NCBI RefSeq assembly: GCF_964204645.1
Contig: NC_134035.1
Location: forward strand, 4,154,001-4,218,000
DNA from: Tubulanus polymorphus
Taxonomy: Eukaryota; Animalia; Nemertea
Direction of reading: 5' to 3'
DNA: 64,000 nucleotides
Shown here: one piece after another, positions 2,811-56,192 of the stretch
Layout of the letters: each line of letters opens with the position of its first letter
Position numbering within the stretch: the stretch's first letter is position 1
The notes under the pieces: model-generated
What the model was told of the DNA's origin: nothing
What the model saw: the letters and a program-made list of their open reading frames with translations, nothing else
Databases searched by the model: none
Position numbers and translations under genes: made by a program

Positions 2811-3736
2811 ATGAGAGACTAAACGCTGTATGATTTGCCTGCAATTAAATTCACAGGAGACTAATGTGTCGATACATTTAGGCGAACTCGGTGCGAAGAC
2901 TGATCCGCCCTAATAAATTCGCCGTATCAAAATATGTCTAAGAGAAAAAATGAAAATAAATGTAAAATCCCACATTGTTGAAAGACTAAAAAGTTTATTC
3001 GAAATACTAGAAGTATTTCGGGTGGCTACTACTGATCTTACTGATTCAATATGTCTTAGAAATATCGCTACCGCTGTTTACAGCTGTGTCTTAAAAAGGA
3101 GCAAAAAGTTGAAGCCCATAGTCTTTGGTTTTACAGCAATCGGATGTATTCAAACAAGTCTAAACTCATGTCTTTCAAAACATTATTGGCGTCGGCGGCG
3201 ACGGCTTATTGACCATATTCCAACTGTATCAAACTTTGAAATCAAATTTCCTAAATCGAAACGAAACGTTACGTCGTCGGTGGCTTTCTCGTGTCATTTC
3301 CACAATACGGCAATCACAGGTCGGTCCTATATACTGACGATGATGCCGCGCCAGATTTGCTGCGAATTTATCGAGAATTTACGAGGTTTCGTTTTGAGGA
3401 AACCGCCGGCTTCAGGTACACTGATGCCGCGGTGTTAGCGGTATAATAGAGCACGACTCGACGCCGACGCCGCTCGCGCGTCCATATGCTACGTTCTTTT
3501 GCGGTGGGTGGACACGCCGTAACGGCAGTCGTAGTAACGGTGATCGGTTGCTGTGGTCTGTTGTTACAGACACGAAATACGGCCGTTCGTCGTTCGGCTG
3601 AAACATTCACTCGACATTAAACGTATCATGCATTGATTCGGCGCATGTAATTTCTGTTTTATGGATTGAATAACACGTCACCGACAGGCGTAAAATAATT
3701 GCGAGTTGGCCGAGATATCTAGATATCTACAAGCGG

Positions 3737-4140
3737 GACCGACCGACCGACCGACCGACCGACCGACCGACCGACCGACCGACCGACCGACCGACCGACC
3801 GACCGACCGACCGACCGACCGACCGACCGACCGACCGACCGACCGACCGACCGACCGACCGACCGACCGACCGACCGACCGACCGACCGACCGACCGACC
3901 GACCGACCGACCGACCGACCGACCGACCGACCGACCGACCGACCGACCGACCGACCGACCGACCGACCGACCGACCGACCGACCGACCGACCGACCGACC
4001 GACCGACCGACCGACCGACCGACCGACCGACCGACCGACCGACCGACCGACCGACCGACCGACCGACCGACCGACCGACCGACCGACCGACCGACCGACC
4101 GACCGACCGACCGACCGACCGACCGACCGACCGACCGACC
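3737..4140. repeat. (GACC)n microsatellite, ~100 units
   Basis: Perfect tetranucleotide run. Confidence 0.98.
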
Positions 4141-4263
4141 TGCGGCTGCGGCGGCTGCGGCGGCTACTGCTGCTGCTGCGGCGGCTACTGCTGCTGCTGC
4201 TGCGGCTACTGCTGCTGCTACCCCGCTGCTACTACAGCCCCCACCACCGCCGCCGCTGCTGCT
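4141..4263. repeat. Compound (TGC/GGC/GCC)n trinucleotide repeat
   Basis: Directly abuts the GACC run. Confidence 0.9.
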
Positions 4264-5131
4264 GGTTTTATCGAACTGCTAATTTCCAACCAAACGTGTT
4301 TCTTTTCAAATTAGTCGCCGTCTAAAACAATGAAAATATGATAAATCTTCCCGAGTCTAATATTAGACAAATAATATAAGCGATTGATCCTTTAAGTCTT
4401 GCCAGCTCGCGCGCTGCCATGACAACTTTTTGTTTACCTGCCCTCGGGTGTCTTCTCTGTTTCTCCCCTCTCACTACCGGGAGAGAGGTGTTATCCTCGC
4501 GTAAAATAGTTTACGGTATTCCGCTGTCATGGCGACTGTTGTAAGTCTTGGTAATCAGTCGCGCATTGGCAGGGATGGGAAAAAAGGGCAAACTTTCGAA
4601 TGAGCAGTAAGTAATCCAGTTAGCGAGACTTATGTTCATCCAAAGCCGATTGCAAAATTCTGGAAAAAAACTCTGAATGAAATTAACGCCTAGATCTTCG
4701 AAAGGTTAACAATAGTTTTCAGGCTTGCAAAAGCTACTGTTATTTCGCGCATTTCTATCGGGAAGGTGGAGTCCAAGGGGATGATTAAAGAAATCGGAAT
4801 TTTCGCTGGTGCCTATTCAGACGATAACAAGAATAAATATTGTCGGTGATGGTCATTCAATGAACCCTATCAAGTACCATTAAGAACCATTTGAGGATAC
4901 TGCAAAATATCTCTTTGGATGGAATTTTTCTTCAAAGTAACTTTGCAAGGAGCTTTCCAAAAATGGTTCAACCTTTTTTGACGAACTTCTTCAAAGAACC
5001 TTAAGGGCTCTCCCTGGGTGGCGGCAAGGCAAGACACCCACGTAACGGTTCTACAGGTTCTAAGAGTGATGGGGTCTCGGATGAAATATTCGCAGTATTG
5101 CGGTAGTCTATATCTGTCTGATAATGTTACT

Positions 5132-15482: not shown

Positions 15483-16571
15483 ATGAATTATAGTCTCACG
15501 ACGACTACGACGATATCAGAAACCTGTAATCGGCCGTACGCTTATAAAAACGTGCTTCTCGTCAGCGTAAAACTAGCGGGCGCTCTACCAATCAGCATCG
15601 TCGGCATCACTCTGAACGGGTTCAGCATTTCCATCATACGTCGCCAGTCGTCTGATCACATCTCGTTGTACCTGTTACGCTGTCTCGCGCTGGCCGATAT
15701 ACTCTTCCTTATTTTCAACACGATTCAGGAACCGTTGCGTTTCGTCGTGTCCTGGTTTACGCAAGGAACTCACATGTTTTGGTTTCCGTACCTGAGCTGG
15801 GGCGTGCGACCGTGGATCTATAAAACGGCTTGGATTCCGCGATATTCGGCGCAGTTGACGCGCAACTGGATAACCGTGCTGTTAGTGCTAGAACGGTGCG
15901 TTTCGCTCGCGTATCCATTTTTCGCGAGAACGCACGTTACGAAATCGAGAATAAGAACCGTTATTTGTTGTATGGTCATCGTATTCGCTATCATGTACTG
16001 CCCGTTTGTAATCGGTACTGAAATAGTCGTCAGGTACTTCGACCCTTGTAACGACGTGTACATATCGACGATCGGCCGGGCAAACGGCGAAATACGCAGC
16101 GCTTTCTACGAAGCGTTTCACTGGCTCGACCGATTCGTCGGTATTTTAGCTAAAGAACTGATCCCGGTAATTTTACTCTCGACTTGCAACTGCTATTTGA
16201 TATGGACGCTCAGAAAACTGACGGCGAAACGAAACGAGATGATCGGCGGCGAAACGACCCGACTCGACGTGAAGGCTACTAAAATCGCTATAGCTATCGT
16301 CATCCTGTTCGTCATTTGCGAGGTGCCTCCCTCGTTTCGGTCGATGTACCATTTCTTCGGCATGTTCTTACCGAATCTGCCCGTACTGACGTACACCGGC
16401 GCCGTCTACATCGCTCAAATGATGTTCAACGATCTTCTGCCGACTTTAAACTCGTCCGTCAATTTCTTCATATACTATTTGGCGAACGATAATTTTAGAG
16501 CCACCGCTAAAAAGTTATTGCTTAAGTACGCGAACCGACCGGGTCGCTTAGCGTCTCGGAAAAAACTGTAG
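15483..16571 (+). CDS. Intronless class A GPCR, FMRFamide/sex-peptide-receptor-like, copy 1 (362 aa)
   Basis: Seven hydrophobic segments; GITLN, LALAD, LERC, FVICEVP, NSSVNFFIY motifs; N-terminal NYS sequon. Confidence 0.92.
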   Translation: MNYSLTTTTTISETCNRPYAYKNVLLVSVKLAGALPISIVGITLNGFSISIIRRQSSDHISLYLLRCLALADILFLIFNTIQEPLRFVVSWFTQGTHMFWFPYLSWGVRPWIYKTAWIPRYSAQLTRNWITVLLVLERCVSLAYPFFARTHVTKSRIRTVICCMVIVFAIMYCPFVIGTEIVVRYFDPCNDVYISTIGRANGEIRSAFYEAFHWLDRFVGILAKELIPVILLSTCNCYLIWTLRKLTAKRNEMIGGETTRLDVKATKIAIAIVILFVICEVPPSFRSMYHFFGMFLPNLPVLTYTGAVYIAQMMFNDLLPTLNSSVNFFIYYLANDNFRATAKKLLLKYANRPGRLASRKKL

Positions 16572-19117: not shown

Positions 19118-19332
19118 TAAAATCATTCTTTGATTTCGCCTTATTATTTCTATCTGTGTGAAATTGTCCCGCGCTTCAAATTTCAAACAGAAACCACGCG
19201 TATAATGTATTCTTTGAAATGTATGTATATATTTAAATATGCCAAGCAGAATTATTCACCCTAAAATTGAACTGGGGGGAATTTCAACAACTCTTTTGTA
19301 GTGCGCAGTTTCTCGCTGCGAAGAATCTCGCG

Positions 19333-20427
19333 ATGAATTATAGTCTCACGACGACGACGACGACGACGATATCAGAAACCTGTAATCGGCCTTACGCTTA
19401 TAAAAACGTGCTTCTCGTCAGCGTAAAACTAGCGGGCGGTCTACCAATCAGCATCGTCGGCATCACTCTGAACGGGTTCAGCATTTCCATCATACGTCGC
19501 CAGTCGTCTGATCACATATCGTTGTATCTGTTACGCTGTCTCGCGCTGGCCGATATAGTGTTTCTCGTTTTCAACACGATTCAGGATCCGTTGCGTTTCG
19601 TCGTGTCCTGGTTCACGCAAGGAACTCACATGTTTTGGATGCTGTCCCTGAGCTGGGGCGTGCGACCGTGGATCTATAAAACGGCTTGGATTCCGCGATA
19701 TTCGGCGCAGTTGACGCGCAACTGGATAACCGTGCTGTTAGTGCTAGAACGGTGCGTTTCGCTCGCGTATCCATTTTTCGCGAGATCGCACGTTACGAAA
19801 CCGAGAATAAGAACCGTTATTTGTTGTATGGTCATCGTATTCGCTATCATGTACTGCCCGTTTGTAATCGGTACTGAAATAGTCGTCAGGTACTTCGACC
19901 CTTGTAACGACGTGTACATATCGACGATCGGCCGGGCAAAAGGCGAAATACGCAGCGGTTTCTTCGAAGCGTTTATCTGGCTCGACCGATTCGTCGGTAT
20001 TTTAGCTAAAGAACTGATCCCGGCAGTTTTACTGTTGGCTTGCAACTGCTATTTGATATGGACGCTCAGAAAACTGACGGCGAAACGAAAAGAGATGATC
20101 GTCGGCGTAACGACCCGACTCGACGTGAAGGCTACTAAAATCGCTATAGCTATCGTCGTCCTGTTCGTCATTTGCGAGGTGCCTCCCTCGTTTCGGTCGA
20201 TGTACCATTTCTTCGGCATGTTCTTACCGAATCTGCCCGTACTGACGTACACCGGCGCCGTCTACATCGCTCAAATGATGTTCAACGATCTTCTGCCGAC
20301 TTTAAACTCGTCCGTCAATTTCTTCATATACTATTTGGCGAACGATAATTTTAGAGCCACCGCTAAAAAGTTATTGCTTAAGTACGCGAACCGACCGGGT
20401 CGCTTAGCGTCTCGGAAAAAACTGTAG
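19333..20427 (+). CDS. Intronless class A GPCR, copy 2 (364 aa, the divergent copy)
   Basis: Paralog of 15483-16571 with intact ORF; first ATG at 19333. Confidence 0.92.
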   Translation: MNYSLTTTTTTTISETCNRPYAYKNVLLVSVKLAGGLPISIVGITLNGFSISIIRRQSSDHISLYLLRCLALADIVFLVFNTIQDPLRFVVSWFTQGTHMFWMLSLSWGVRPWIYKTAWIPRYSAQLTRNWITVLLVLERCVSLAYPFFARSHVTKPRIRTVICCMVIVFAIMYCPFVIGTEIVVRYFDPCNDVYISTIGRAKGEIRSGFFEAFIWLDRFVGILAKELIPAVLLLACNCYLIWTLRKLTAKRKEMIVGVTTRLDVKATKIAIAIVVLFVICEVPPSFRSMYHFFGMFLPNLPVLTYTGAVYIAQMMFNDLLPTLNSSVNFFIYYLANDNFRATAKKLLLKYANRPGRLASRKKL

Positions 20428-22005: not shown

Positions 22006-22793
22006 ATTTGACGAGAATACATTTCACTTTTTTATTTTTTGTTTTTCAATGTATTTCTTCTCTTCATCGCAAAGGAGTTTTGACCCATTCTGAAGGTTTT
22101 TTAGTCCCTCATTTATATAAATAATTTGTGTTATGCTCATTTCAGAGCGTCCTTCTTACAAACCGTACACATTTGCTGGGAGATGAAACGGGAAGTTTGA
22201 TTTTGATATCGGGAATCGAAGTACAGATATAGTTGGATGGTCGGTCTAATTTAGGTATTTTTGTTTTGTCAAATTGAAGAACATACATGGAAGTTTTGGT
22301 ACCGGTTGGTGTAAACAATCTACCAACCTGAACCGGTAAGAGACTTTTTCGGGTTAATTTCTGCTGGTTGTCAAATTTAATACAAAAATATCCCAGATTT
22401 GGCATTAACGTTTAAGAAAGTATGCTGTCCATTTCGATACCTTAATACGTGTCTTCTATTTATTGTGATGGACCAGGCTTAAAAAGCTTTCAGATTAATG
22501 CTTCGTAGCGAAATGCGACGCCTTAATGTTTAATGTATATAGGGACGCCGAATTCGCTAAGTGTTAGAGACGGGGTCCACTTGAAACACTTTATACTTCA
22601 GGTTCTTAACCGAGAAATTCTTCAACAGTTACAGTTCCCCGAAGGAGGCTATAGAAATGGCGTTAACTCGAATCGACACACATACAAGTGTATCTTACTA
22701 TACAATGGAACCTCTATTCACCCAAAAGTTGAACTGGGGGAATTTCAACAACTCTTTTGTAGTGCGCAGTTTCTCGCTGCGAAGAATCTCGCG

Positions 22794-23882
22794 ATGAATT
22801 ATAGTCTCACGACGACTACGACGATATCAGGAACCTGTAATCGGCCGTACGCTTATAAAAACGTGCTTCTCGTCAGCGTAAAACTAGCGGGCGCTCTACC
22901 AATCAGCATCGTCGGCATCACTCTGAACGGGTTCAGCATTTCCATCATACGTCGCCAGTCGTCTGATCACATCTCGTTGTATCTGTTACGCTGTCTCGCG
23001 CTGGCCGATATACTCTTCCTTGTGTTCAACACGATTCAGGAACCGTTGCGTTTCGTCGTGTCCTGGTTTACGCAAGGAACTCACATGTTTTGGTTTCCGT
23101 ACCTGAGCTGGGGCGTGCGACCGTGGATCTATAAAACGGCTTGGATTCCGCGATATTCGGCGCAGTTGACGCGCAACTGGATAACCGTGCTGTTAGTGCT
23201 AGAACGGTGCGTTTCGCTCGCGTATCCATTTTTCGCGAGAACGCACGTTACGAAATCGAGAATAAGAACCGTTATTTGTTGTTTGGTCATCGTATTCGCT
23301 ATCATGTACTGCCCGTTTGTAATCGGTACTGAAATAGTCGTCAGGTACTTCGACCCTTGTAACGACGTGTACATATCGACGATCGGCCGGGCAAACGGCG
23401 AAATACGCAGCGCTTTCTACGAAGCGTTTCACTGGCTCGACCGATTCGTCGGTATTTTAGCTAAAGAACTGATCCCGGTAATTTTACTCTCGACTTGCAA
23501 CTGCTATTTGATATGGACGCTCAGAAAACTGACGGCGAAACGAAACGAGATGATCGGCGGCGAAACGACCCGACTCGACGTGAAGGCTACTAAAATCGCT
23601 ATAGCTATCGTCGTCCTGTTCGTCATTTGCGAGGTGCCTCCCTCGTTTCGGTCGATGTACCATTTCTTCGGCATGTTCTTACCGAATCTGCCCGTACTGA
23701 CGTACACCGGCGCCGTCTACATCGCTCAAATGATGTTCAACGATCTTCTGCCGACTTTAAACTCGTCCGTCAATTTCTTCATATACTATTTGGCGAACGA
23801 TAATTTTAGAGCCACCGCTAAAAAGTTATTGCTTAAGTACGCGAACCGACCGGGTCGCTTAGCGTCTCGGAAAAAACTGTAG
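22794..23882 (+). CDS. Intronless class A GPCR, copy 3 (362 aa)
   Basis: About 4 aa differences from copy 1; start assigned by homology to copies 1 and 2. Confidence 0.92.
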   Translation: MNYSLTTTTTISGTCNRPYAYKNVLLVSVKLAGALPISIVGITLNGFSISIIRRQSSDHISLYLLRCLALADILFLVFNTIQEPLRFVVSWFTQGTHMFWFPYLSWGVRPWIYKTAWIPRYSAQLTRNWITVLLVLERCVSLAYPFFARTHVTKSRIRTVICCLVIVFAIMYCPFVIGTEIVVRYFDPCNDVYISTIGRANGEIRSAFYEAFHWLDRFVGILAKELIPVILLSTCNCYLIWTLRKLTAKRNEMIGGETTRLDVKATKIAIAIVVLFVICEVPPSFRSMYHFFGMFLPNLPVLTYTGAVYIAQMMFNDLLPTLNSSVNFFIYYLANDNFRATAKKLLLKYANRPGRLASRKKL

Positions 23883-41200: not shown

Positions 41201-43360
41201 TTTTTAACCTAATTATCTTTCCCGATATTGATATTGATTACCGTTGATTTCAATTGCGGGTAGAGCGAGAACTTTTATCACAGGCTTTCACTATTTGGAT
41301 ATTTCTGAAACAAAACCCAGATTCATTTAAAGAAAATACGTAGCTGCACTAACAATCAATATGCACAATGGAACAATTCATATATAGTTCTTGTTTCGGT
41401 TCGGGTCCGATTTCAAGGCCATTCAAAAACACATCCATCAAAAACACAGCTTATCATTGCATATTAACATTACATCCTCGAGCAAACTTCCAGGTCTGCC
41501 AAACTTACTTCCTAAAAGATTTCAATTATAGTTAATGAATCATTAAACGTAAACGTTATCTTATAACTTTTTCTAAGATACCCCTGTAGGAAGGACAACA
41601 TTTCGAAATGTGCAGTTATTTCAAACTGCTGGCGACGATTTTTTAAGGCATCGTTTTAGAATATCATCTTCAGCCGTAGTTATGGAGTATCGACGATCGT
41701 AACATTGACGGTTCATGAGGTGTAAAATGTATCTTTTCGTTGTTGTTATCTGAAGCGAATACAGTTGCGAACTTCGGTTTGCCCGCACCGGCTCTCTATA
41801 CGGCGCGGCGGTTAACTGTCATCGGTTACGCTGATAACAGGATCGATGAAGCCGAGAGAGGGAGAGGGAAAGAGAGAGGGTATTTGAGAATCTATATACG
41901 CCTGCTTTTCTCGGGGCATCGTTCCCCGAGTTTATCTCCGATGATGTTCGAACGCGCACAACTCACACACAGGTGCTTCGCCGAGAAGAGCGAAGGTGAT
42001 TTTAATTAGTGCCACTTTACGGAGAGAATAGCTAAGTCATTAACGCGCCGCGCTCGTTCTCGGCTGTTATACACGGGGAAAGCTTCTTAAAGTTTCCACA
42101 TGCGCGAAATCGCGAAACATCCGAACGCAGAACAAGAAACATTTTACGTTAAAACCATGAATATTGACACATTTTTGATAGTTCCTCAGATAAAACTCTA
42201 TCTTCAGTGAAAAATTCTACATTGTTTCTCAAAGCAATGAAAAAGTTACAGCCAATCAGATAAAATTACCAATTTTGGGCGCCTTCCTAAAAGTGACGCC
42301 GAGATGTTGCAGCCGAGAAAAATGAAATAAACGCCATCAGAAAATAGAAATTGTCACCTTTCTAACGATATATAACTTAAATTGTAGTGGCAAAAGGGGG
42401 ATAGACGACAATTGATCGCGCCAAAGGTTTTATTATAAAAACTGTTAAAATCTGTCTGTACAATCTGTACAATACGGGACCCGCGGACCGCCTCAAAATG
42501 GCGCCTGGTAACTGAAAACTTCCCTATTATATACGCCCGACCGATCGAGTATATCCGTCCAATGCCTTCCAATGAATTCTTCTCTTTTTTATGTTGTCGT
42601 TAGGTTTGGTTTCAAAATCGACGGGCGAAATGGCGAAAACGGGAACGATTCGGACAGTTGCAGAACATGCGGGCGATGGCCGGTTCACCGCCTTACGATC
42701 AGATCCCGATACCGTGTCCCGTCACGTATCCGCAGGTAAGCAGGTCGAGTTTCATTCAAACTCGGGGTAATCGTCCAAATGACGATTACTCACAGTTTCG
42801 GGGTAACTTTTGATTTGGAGTCGAGAGGACGCAAGGATTCATTGGGGCCGGTTGATGATTCCAAAGCAGAGTTCACCGGTCTCGGCCTATTTTGGTTTTA
42901 CAGCCCTGGCAGCAGAATTGAATGGAAAAATAGCCTTTCTCATGTCAAACTACTTGCCTGAAATACGGGTACAATGTTTAATACATTAATAAATTACTTT
43001 TGATTTCAGATGCAGAATCCGTGGAATACAAAGGTATCGATGCCCGCTCAGTATAACGGGGCTGGTTCGTGTATGACCCCTCATAACAACATGCCCGCTT
43101 TCATGGGACTGGCACAAAACGGTATAATGCCCGCGTCACTAGGGGGCGCCACGTGCGTGGTGCCGCCGCCGCCCCAGACGCATCCGGGATACGGGCGCCA
43201 ATTGGACACTTTTCCACCGACAGTCGAAGGCTGCGTGGACACTGGTCGTAGGAGTTCCAGTATAGCTACATTGCGACTGAAAGCTCGTGAACACAGCGTG
43301 GCTATGGGCATCTTACCGACTCTCAGAGACTCGGTAGTGACGTCGCAGCATTTTAACTAG
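38247..43360 (+). CDS. ALX: Aristaless-like (Alx/Cart1 family) PRD-class homeobox transcription factor; exons 38247-38490, 39804-40114, 42604-42735, 43010-43360
   Basis: [47 protein letters not shown]|[18 protein letters not shown] (Q50, intron at helix-3 position 46/47); [19 protein letters not shown]; phases consistent. Confidence 0.93.
39443..39564. mobile_element. PIF/Harbinger-like palindromic MITE in Alx intron 1
   Basis: CTG|gggccagttgctcaaaagttggttagag ... ctttaaccacacttttgatggtcc|CTG. Confidence 0.6.
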
Positions 43361-51874: not shown

Positions 51875-54330
51875 AATATGTCAAATTCCATAAATTTTGC
51901 TATAGATTTAAAAAAAGTCGACACATCCCTTTGTTAAGAGTGCTGTAAATTATAGATACATTGTGGTTTTCAATATTCAGCTCTGTTTCTCTTGTTTTAG
52001 ATGTTGGATGAATATTGCATATATACAAATGTGATACGGAAATGGATTTTAAACGCACTGCCGCTGTATCGATGTCGTGTATTTTTTCCTCTTCAGTTGT
52101 GTTTATGGGTGAGTAGTGAATATCCTTCTTTTTCTGACGGTCCTCGGGGCTTGAATTTTCCAAAGGTTGCCCCATGTCATGATCGGTCTGGTCCTCGGCT
52201 GTTCTCGTAAAGTCCAAGATAACACTGGAAACCATTCGTATGAAGCATATAAAAAAACAGTACAAAACACTGGTTCTGACAAAAATATTTTGAAATGTGT
52301 TTCATTTTTATTAAATCTTGTTACAAGTAGTTGTTGTAGTAGTAGTTTTCACAAAATAATGCAGAAAACGCAATCATCGTGTTTCTAATATAAGCGACGA
52401 TTACGTTATTACACATCGAAAAAATTACTTCAGGATCGAGTTACTATTAATGTACTAAGGCGATATTCTAAATTGAAAAAAAAACAACAACAACAAAAAA
52501 CCGATTACGACTTGGTTCTAGTCGATACCGCGATATTTTGAATTATCGAAGATAGCAATAGATCGCGTGTGGTTGATTTTTGTTCGACCACGTGTATACC
52601 GAATGCAGTGTGATCGCATCCGTTTTAATTTGTCGTTCTGTTTCGGGATAGTGAAGCCGAGCTCTCTGTATTATAGCTGCGTTATATAATTGATTGTATC
52701 AGATTTAAAGACAATCGCGTGAAATTGAACCTCACGCGCTTTTGTGAAAATTAGCTGCGGTTTTTGAGAGATGTTATCACGACAAGACATCGAGAGGTTG
52801 AATGACATCCGAGTTAGCGAACGAAACACGGCTTGTATCTGGATCTGGGCGAAGCTTAGATTTTTAGATTTCCCGCGCCAGATTCCTGTGCCGAGCATTT
52901 TTGAGGGGTAGTTCTATTTTCTATTTCAAGACAAAGAGCACTCTTTTTCACCGTGAAAAGGGGCACTTTCCTATTGAAAAAGGACATATCTTAAATATGA
53001 TTATATCGATAACCTAATCTTTAACAACATCTATAATTCTAAGATTTGAATGTTGTTTAATATTTATCTCCAACATTCGTCAGTTACTTATTTTATTGAC
53101 TAATTGATTTATTAAGTAATTGGACAATTTTACGGAATGATTACTTTTCATTTTCCACCAAAAATAATTGTAACCAAATTTCGAAAAATCTTGACCCGAA
53201 TTTTCACACACTGACTTTTTTAAGGGCACTTTTTTAGGGGGTCCGTTCGCTACTCCGAACTCCCACTCCCCTCTGCACTGGCCTGCGCTTTTAAGCTTCG
53301 ATCGCGAGCGACTATTAGTTACGTTTACTGGAATCGCGGTCGATCAGAGAGCATCGTTCAAAATCGCTTCATCAAATACAAACGGTGCGATCACACCTTT
53401 TAGAGCCGGGTTTGAGTAAACATTTTCAGGAACTATTTTCGATCTTCGAATGGCTGACTCGTTACGATCATACGACTTGAAAGCAGGAATCATATTGACC
53501 TAATAAGTTCGCGATGAACGTCAATGAGGATTTTATCGAACTTTTAAGTTTTTAGAGAGAATATAGTTTCGTAAGCGATATTTTGTTGTTGGCTGACAAT
53601 TTAGAAAAAAGGAATCAAAACATCATACACCACCCTTATGAATAGTAAATAGTAAAGACCCTATTGATTGATACGTAACGACTATGAAGCAATGATATAG
53701 TGCTGTAAATGTAGTGCTAAGATAGGACGGTGAAATGAAATGATCTAATTCTATAACAATACGACACAAGGAGGAGGATCGTTGTTTACCGAGTTACGTG
53801 ATACATAAACGATATTGAAATTTGTTGACGAAATAGACTTAAGTCTGAAATGGAAGTTTGGCCAATTTAAGCTCTGGCGATATAATAACAAGTATATACA
53901 CCGCGTATTGGAAAGATTTACATTTAAACTCGTCGATCTTAGTATTCAACTTCCAGCTCCGGGTCGTTAGTTGTTCGGAATGCCTTCATTTGGAATTGAT
54001 CTCGTGAAAATAATCCCGTAAACATAACCTATTCATAATCCATTAGATTATTCGGATATCTGATTTGATATTGAAATCTCTAAAATTTTCACGCAGAAAA
54101 AAATTCAATAAAAACCAATGACAAGGTAATGAACATCCTTCGCCTCCTAAAACGAGCTCGTGAATATACGCGCGTTGATATTCAGGTTCGGACGCACAAC
54201 AGAAAGTCGGTGGTGTTCGAAAATAAACTATTACTAAAACGAAGTATTTTTTTAGTGAAACGAGTGTCGCGCGCGCCGTCGTCATTTACCCGGCGCCAAG
54301 TCTTTCACTGTCTCGTGTGTCGCGCCCGAT

Positions 54331-55311
54331 TCACGACTGGCTTCGTCGCTTCACGTGGAGCCACGTCGACAGCAGCGGACATTTCGATCCCGGGCAAACG
54401 TTTCGTATTTGTCGATCTTGCATTTGAGGTCCGCGTTTCGACGGACAGCGCGGTCCCGGGCAGAACACGTCCGAATCGGAGCCGCCGAAGTTCGGCGCCG
54501 CTTGCCGTTGAAGCTGTTGGTAAAATTGGCCGCCTTCGTCTCCGAATTCCGATTGATCTGAAATGTATAATAATAACGATTCGTTAGTCGATGTACGTGT
54601 AAGATTTATACGCAATTGTAAATTTGCGAACCTGTCCTGTCGGGACATACTCGAGCCCAAAGGCTGTACCGATAAGGGATGCCCTGGAAAAGAGATCATA
54701 GAAGTAGGCATAAAAATGCCTCTCGTTGGTTGTGAAGACGATAGCCCTAGCCGTAGACAAAGAATGTATATAGTTAATAGGAAAGTTAAGCACGACCGGA
54801 TCGCGGATCAAATGAATTTTTCGTTGATTTTTACGGCGCTTAATTCTCAATTCAAGTTTACAGATTTTCATTAAGTAGTCAGACAAATAGAAAACGATTT
54901 AGAATATGCAATGTTTGTAAATTTGCAAACCTGATTTACAAACCCTCGATATGGCATCCCCTATAGCCTAAAGCCTATACCTATGATAAGGGGGTGCCTT
55001 GGATAAGATAAGAATCTTGGATAAGATAAGAATCTACATGGTTAGGAGAGAAAGTCGTAACCAGATCAAATCACTTTATCGTTGAATGTCAATTCAAGTT
55101 TTAGGCATGTTCGTCTATTCATAGAAATACGAATACGAACAATAGTGAATCGTTTATCCATAGATTCGAACGGGATAGATCGGAATTTACGATGGTTTCT
55201 TCGAAAACTTGCTTCTCGATTGCAGGGCCCTCTCCTTACCACGGTAACGCCCTAACCTGAGGTCACCACCAGGAAACAAAATATAATCGATGCTAACTTA
55301 AAAAAATACAT
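54331..55311 (-). CDS. Candidate secreted peptide (neuropeptide- or toxin-like) precursor, 93 aa; exons 55311-55257 and 54557-54331
   Basis: Signal-like MYFFKLASIIFCFLVVTS, phase-1 intron (CAG|GTTAGG ... TTTCAG), then DQSEFGDEGG...VFCPGPRCPS-KR...RQIR-NVCPGSKCPLLSTWLHV-KRR-SQS*. The second exon is better supported than the first. Confidence 0.55.
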
Positions 55312-55865
55312 CCTTTAAGGTTTTTCCTTGGTGAGCAGTTTTCTGCTGCGACTACGTACGTTAGAACCTCGATGAAATAATTAATACGTTTTATTATCAA
55401 TTCTTTGATGTTGTATCGTGTATTTTTTCTTGACGCCAGCTAAAAACTTCAGCATTGCGTATATATTTCACTTCTGGCTATCATGATACATGCCATGTTG
55501 GAAACCGAAACGCGAGACCTGTATCGATGCTGTGAATGTGCGCGCATCACGTTCACGCGTTGTGCCGGATTAAATTCGTTTAATTATCACACCGGCGCGC
55601 ACAACAACAAAACTTATCTGCCGTAATATCGTAATTCCGTCGCGAAGTTTTCGTTCGTGTTTACCGGGCGTGCGGTGCATCGCCATGGAAGTATCGGTAA
55701 ATATGAAAACTTTATTGCGAGCTTGGACGCAAACTCAATACGCTTGAAGACAATGCAGAATTGGAAAAACAAACGTAGCGTGAGAATAAACGTGAATTAG
55801 TTCAGTATTTCTAATGAATCCTCCGGCATTTTTACACCTGGCATTATTACCTATTACCAAATGAG

Positions 55866-56192
55866 TTTTGGATTTGGCTCCTGAAAGTTGAGTCGAAACG
55901 CCTTTGCTCTCTTAGTTTTGGAAATGGCCCATAGAAGTAAGTCTAAACGCCATTGCTCTCTTAAGGTTTGGAAATGGCTCCTGAAATTGATTCTAAGCAT
56001 CACGTCTCTCTTAGCATGGCTCATAGAATTAAGTCGAAACGTCACTAACTTTTTATTTTTGAAAAGGGCTTTTAGAATTGCGTCGAAACGTCTAAATATC
56101 CAGAGTTTTGAACATGGCTCATAGGATTAAGTCGAAACGTCACGACCGTCTTAGCTTTGAAAAAGACTCTGAGAATTGAGCCGAAATGTCAC
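55866..56192 (+). repeat. ~46-bp degenerate tandem repeat (~7 units) resembling decayed hammerhead units
   Basis: Consensus ~tttgaa(c/a)atGGCTC-n8-GAGTC-GAAAC-GTC. Confidence 0.6.

Follow-up and report, generated by a model that had tools for sequence, protein, structure and literature searches.

On the minus strand of the window (the 64-kb stretch of Tubulanus polymorphus DNA analysed here) lies a candidate two-exon gene, absent from the annotation, that would encode a secreted precursor with two copies of a CPGxxCP motif between basic cleavage sites. We put the probability that it is a real gene at about 0.4. The model is internally consistent at the level of sequence: the A ahead of the start codon, the signal-like 18-mer, the phase-1 intron, the branch point, the acceptor, the basic sites and the codon score all fit one reading. 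We infer transcription, splicing, secretion and processing from these features, and the gene interpretation of the earlier note on this DNA can be neither confirmed nor dismissed.

All features of the candidate are given on the minus strand. Exon 1 (55257-55311), read directly from the letters, comprises 55 nt, that is, an ATG-initiated run of 18 codons plus one base, and ends in phase 1. Its translation, MYFFKLASIIFCFLVVTS, is a hydrophobic, signal-like 18-mer in which a hydrophobicity scan finds a core of nine residues with a mean Kyte-Doolittle value of 3.18. The n-region contains a Lys, and V-x-S precedes the junction; an A at position -3 gives the ATG a good Kozak-type context. The candidate intron (54558-55256) is 699 nt long, and its phase-1 position falls just after the signal-like 18-mer. 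A perfect CTAAC branch-point consensus, also read directly, occupies 54583-54587, 26 nt ahead of the acceptor AG, and is followed by a T-rich tract and the acceptor TTTCAG (tttcag/AT). The phases agree across the intron, where the split codon G/AT reads Asp.

The terminal coding exon 2 (54331-54557) consists of two bases, 74 codons and a TGA stop codon (54333-54331), and the modelled product of both exons has 93 residues. An acidic, Gln-rich spacer comes first, followed by the first motif copy, CPGPRCP (54442-54462, in the context VF-CPGPRCP-S), with KR (54438-54433) directly after the Ser, and then by a 10-residue linker ending in RQIR (54414-54403). The second copy, CPGSKCP (54376-54396), is preceded by NV and followed by eight residues (LLSTWLHV), KRR (54351-54343) and three further residues. 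Exon 2 holds four Cys in all and ends 15 residues past the last of them. KR, RQIR and KRR all stand in the motif frame, and the motifs are thus bounded by the dibasic and R-x-x-R sites of secreted prohormones; as 10 of the 74 residues are basic, chance alone would give about 1.3 adjacent basic pairs. The main elements described in the earlier note, namely the two motif copies with their basic sites on a minus-strand exon, the 55-bp ATG exon some 700 bp upstream with a hydrophobic 18-mer and matching phase 1, and the good TTTCAG acceptor, were all found where it had placed them, and the CTAAC branch point, which it had missed, adds to the acceptor.

Codon usage in three GPCR ORFs of the window served as the training set for a score that was applied to the motif frame and to 230 stop-free stretches. 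At 0.175 per codon, the motif frame is the best of the six frames and lies in the top 4% of the 230 stretches, but the score is partly a G+C effect (other G+C islands reach 0.17) and only the comparison between frames was used. The GC3 of the motif frame is 0.61, compared with 0.59-0.62 in the three GPCR ORFs. Signal-like ATG mini-exons of equal hydrophobicity with a phase-1 GT occur five times in 128 kb-strand (about 0.04 per kb-strand), which gives an expectation of about 0.03 in 699 nt, and exon 1 is the sole one within 5.4 kb upstream of exon 2. About 3% of open stretches of similar size contain an internal repeat matching at five of seven positions, and two Cys are seen in exon 2 alone. 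The DNA pattern of a single CPGxxCP is common, with 140 places in the 268-Mb genome as against 153 for a reversed control; at any one locus, two in-frame copies at a spacing of 66 nt are rare. Multiplying the measured rates by the odds of two conserved Cys, of basic pairs following them and of a usable acceptor, we arrive at a rough estimate, to the order of one per 268-Mb genome, for comparable loci arising by chance. Many hidden peptide genes have been proposed in this genome, and a choice among many trials must therefore be reckoned with.

The weaker points of the model lie at the donor and the 3' end. The donor of exon 1, CAG/GTTAGG, whose last exon base is 55257, has a T at +3, and a competing GTAAGG, which the earlier note had considered the stronger donor, is indeed present 17 nt downstream (55234-55239, GT at 55239-55238; read directly). 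It is unusable for the ATG of exon 1 because the frame reaches a TAG at 55254-55252. In the proposed donor, seven of nine positions can presumably pair with U1, at least as many as in its rival. At the other end, a possible 3' untranslated region (53914-54330) contains weak variants of the polyadenylation signal only (ACTAAA at 54256 and AATGAA at 53990). Neither AATAAA nor ATTAAA occurs in the 1218 nt after the stop codon, where about two would be expected by chance (background, 1.6 per kb-strand); in the GPCR genes of the window, the first polyadenylation signal likewise lies 700-800 nt out. The candidate intron has repeats of its own: within 54600-55135 lie two diverged copies of a 250-300-nt unit, with three repeat families spaced 242-299 nt apart. 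An 18-nt sequence is duplicated perfectly in tandem at 54998-55035, and a dispersed repeat, short at about 40-60 nt, lies at about 54691-54743.

Contigs from four sequencing runs of the species, here numbered X1 to X4, bear on the locus. In X1-X3, depth is even over the intron, the flanks and intergenic DNA as well as the exons, and of the 33 contig ends listed, 11 coincide with a GATC or GANTC site; such sites fill about 4% of positions. Because of these contig ends and the even cover of intron and intergenic DNA, X1-X3 are restriction-ligation (Hi-C-like) DNA libraries. A contig break at 54555-54559 in X1 and X2 was examined as a splice branch and rejected, as a GATC site at 54555-54558 coincides with the predicted acceptor. 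The 2015 run X4 is the only RNA-like run of the species and was taken to be RNA by guess; it has no contig on 52900-58800. For the junction 55257^54557, which the earlier note had proposed to check with RNA-seq reads, this sole RNA-like run gives a mild negative that leaves absence unproven. One 744-letter contig of X1 matches only 54101-54559 and then continues with 285 letters unlike the reference; a ligation chimera or a structural variant of that sample may explain it.

The DNA runs also show the variation around the candidate. Each of the three yields a single contig at exon 2, over 54279-54475, and no variant is listed between 53914 and 54576 in any of them. The X3 contig has at least 12 differences in 908 bp to either side of this variant-free block, the flanks differ by 1-5%, and a second haplotype shows 4-5% divergence over the intron and the upstream region. 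For two haplotypes at about 1% diversity, the probability of an identical 660-bp block is near 0.13. The block is suggestive as weak evidence and fits a regulatory element equally well; low polymorphism was rejected as support for the gene, since it is not significant given coalescent variance.

The window is part of a 14-Mb contig, and within it the candidate lies about 11 kb beyond the last exon of a homeobox gene and is convergent with it. This gene was recognized by an OAR motif (PF03826, 38.6 bits) at 43247-43300 on the plus strand, and twelve other OAR matches occur in the genome. Paired-like homeobox proteins, Alx among them, carry this motif at their C-terminus, and the gene is presumably the Alx of the earlier note. 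Farther away, three tandem, intronless Srw-type seven-transmembrane ORFs lie on the plus strand at 15483-16571, 19267-20427 and 22533-23882 (362, 386 and 449 aa; E values of 1e-15 to 3e-17). Downstream AATAAA signals follow the first and third ORFs at matching spacing, and the duplication therefore included the 3' flank. Any link of the candidate to these GPCRs, 30 kb away, is pure speculation.

Methylated animal genomes are usually depleted in CpG, and the whole window has a marked CpG excess, with an observed/expected ratio of 1.42 for CpG and 0.99 for GpC. The earlier description of exon 2 as CpG-rich is therefore correct but not distinctive, as the window shares this property; what differs is G+C, at 0.58 in the exon versus 0.42 for the window, and the rise begins exactly at the acceptor. 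Elsewhere in the window, G+C reaches up to 0.75 at 3706-4314 (plus strand), a region open in several frames, one of which matches the Pfam PT disordered repeat (E 5e-36). The regions 52900-53200 and 55850-56050 are dispersed or satellite-like repeats with a contig depth of 800-2000 versus about 30 elsewhere; many of their contigs run on into unlike sequence, and 55850-56050 is made of tandem units of about 60 nt. Some 6.0-6.4 kb past the end of the window (L002 6014-6361, minus strand), in the orientation of the candidate, there is an ORF with a signal-peptide-like start and then an acidic stretch; it has no Pfam match and no homologue in the word-indexed protein collection.

How else can the block be read? 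A serious possibility, although short of an even chance, is that it is a G+C-rich non-coding island, for example regulatory DNA in the gene-poor region flanking the paired-like homeobox gene, in which the ORF is due to chance, a 21-nt repeat happens to read CPGxxCP, and the ATG mini-exon is coincidental. The repeat invites this reading at the DNA level. The two motif cores of 21 nt lie at a spacing of 66 nt and share 17 of 21 bases; within their C, P, G, C and P codons all 15 bases are identical, five synonymous positions included; the flanks align at a near-random level, and the cores contain the palindrome CCCGGG. Five identical synonymous positions would be unexpected for an old repeat kept at the protein level alone, and the identity of the codons appears better explained by a very local duplication or by conservation at the DNA level. 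A minus-strand second frame and a plus-strand ORF of 152 aa are also open over the block; since three of the six frames are open, openness alone means little. High G+C continues for about 70 nt past the stop codon of exon 2, and similar G+C islands at 58-62 kb have no long ORF, as expected of regulatory DNA near a developmental gene such as the one marked by the OAR motif at 43247-43300. An island would also agree with the lack of an RNA contig, of a homologue and of a polyadenylation signal in our searches, and the chance estimate of about one such locus per genome, rough as it is, leaves room for it. Against it stand the motif frame, which has the best codon score of the six, the rise in G+C, whose start falls precisely on a good acceptor preceded by a branch point, and the strongly hydrophobic, right-phase ATG mini-exon 699 nt upstream, where about 0.03 are expected. 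The block matches no Rfam family, and we know of no transcription-factor site of this 21-nt form, which we also count against an island.

It is improbable, in our view, that the block is transcribed in some other way, as an exon of a non-coding RNA, in the other open minus-strand frame, or behind a different, non-secretory upstream exon. The second minus frame, open from the acceptor to 54352, speaks for this idea. Of the six bases that differ between the repeat copies, three are synonymous in the second frame and none in the motif frame. Its score, however, is 0.086 per codon versus 0.175, and it is Arg-rich, like CG-rich DNA read out of frame. The same frame (54352-54557) holds F-N-G-K-R-R-R, a textbook amidation and cleavage site, which shows how easily CG-rich DNA yields prohormone-like text. 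Exon 1 also leaves openings for another transcript, in that it contains two phase-0 GT sites, at 55270 and 55267, and the GTAAGG donor would turn its ATG frame into a dead end of 19 codons. Yet no other signal-like exon lies within 5.4 kb, and the unspliced alternative, an ORF of 126 aa, has no signal peptide and starts within the dispersed repeat.

Homology searches with the candidate were conducted exon by exon. The 1.5-kb locus is single copy apart from the short dispersed repeat in its intron: no second copy or paralogue of exon 2 was found in the 268-Mb genome, and there was no second locus with two spaced CPGxxCP copies among the matches listed (100 of 140). A HMMER pass of exon 2 over 1.84 billion representative proteins returned four matches (E values of 8e-6 to 6e-4), all rejected as spurious because they are piled-up weak matches to long, internally repetitive proteins. 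The word-indexed protein collection gave nothing for exon 2 and nothing for a neighbouring signal-peptide ORF that served as the positive control, and its negative therefore carries no weight. Pfam, Rfam and the ESM Atlas yielded no match for the candidate, and the CPGxxCP motif appeared in no searchable paper. In the accessible text of the supplementary lists of Thiel et al. 2021 (PMC8557429), the motif and six other short strings of the model were absent, and none of the 72 proneuropeptide groups, as given there, matched a precursor of this kind. The earlier view that CPGxxCP belongs to no named family thus holds for the protein collections, Pfam, the papers and the accessible part of the nemertean lists. 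The orthologues or paralogues with conserved Cys loops, which the earlier note hoped to see, were found neither in the animal's own genome nor in the two protein collections or the Atlas.

If the candidate gene is real, its product might pass through the following steps. The 18-residue signal peptide would be removed by signal peptidase after V-T-S, and each C-x4-C pair would oxidise to a ring of six residues built on a Pro-Gly turn; Arg or Lys stands ahead of the second Cys and Pro behind it. Prohormone convertases would cut at KR, RQIR and KRR, and a carboxypeptidase would trim the basic residues. Two products are predicted, both without an amide: a piece of about 40 residues from the N-terminal part, up to CPGPRCPS, and a 17-mer from the C-terminal part that begins with NVCPGSKCP. 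At nemertean monobasic sites, a second basic residue usually lies 3-6 places upstream (PMC8557429), a rule that RQIR fits. The 22-mer with a possible pyroglutamate proposed in the earlier note would need a cut after QLQR; because QLQR has no basic residue 3-6 places upstream, the first product is more likely to be the whole 40-residue piece. On sequence, the peptides could act either as neuronal or endocrine signals or as secreted defence or toxin peptides. Rather unlikely, but worth stating, is the further reading that the candidate is the single-copy founder of an undescribed C-P-G-x-[R/K]-C-P disulfide-ring family in a palaeonemertean, whose two rings would serve as orphan-receptor signals or as defence peptides.

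Several known peptide systems share parts of this layout. Vasopressin and oxytocin have a six-residue C-x4-C ring with Pro directly after the second Cys, and the candidate too would have such a ring with Pro behind it. It differs in having no Gly amidation signal, two copies rather than one and unrelated ring residues; its motifs stand 32 and 54 residues past the predicted end of the signal peptide instead of adjoining it, and it lacks a neurophysin domain (no Pfam match, and only four Cys in the exon). Kinship with the vasotocin paralogues of T. polymorphus was rejected for the lack of this domain. Urotensin II and CGRP/amylin, which are released by cleavage at basic residues, also form a C-x4-C ring, and ring size is all that they have in common with the candidate, no sequence similarity having been found. 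The candidate has neither the F-W-K core of urotensin II nor a ring at the extreme C-terminus, and, in contrast to calcitonin/CGRP, it has no long amidated helix, with nine residues and no Gly between the second ring and KRR. The modelled precursor also resembles those of the conotoxin type in its order of parts: a signal peptide (putative in the candidate), then an acidic pro-region, then a basic site and a small disulfide peptide. Conotoxins show position-specific conservation of Cys codons, and in the candidate the Cys codons are likewise identical between the copies, whereas the loop residues vary. Unlike conotoxin-type precursors, the candidate would have one disulfide per peptide and belongs to no gene family or cluster, and a sequence search gave no match to nemertean toxin families.

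The nearest analogy lies within the phylum. Thiel et al. 2021 screened the transcriptomes of 13 nemerteans, T. polymorphus included, and reported several lineage-restricted proneuropeptides: ND peptide, PSLamide, WWS, DMF, AGEamide, GGRWamide and GxGH (PMC8557429). As modelled for the candidate, a signal peptide opens each of these short precursors and basic sites flank the peptides; they have no relatives outside the phylum. Unlike the candidate, they have support from transcripts, from orthologues of several species and, in part, from mass spectra (PMC8557429). By analogy, they set a precedent that such genes exist and are overlooked.

The locus shows how far sequence alone reaches in calling a gene of this kind. 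If the candidate is real, it would add a lineage-restricted disulfide-ring precursor to the nemertean peptide repertoire, one missed by a transcriptome screen that included T. polymorphus itself, and its two peptides, short and easy to synthesise, would be available as ligands for assays of receptors or toxicity. Such an addition would be useful and unsurprising: taxon-restricted small secreted peptides are already known in Nemertea, and the candidate would represent a new family within a well-known kind.
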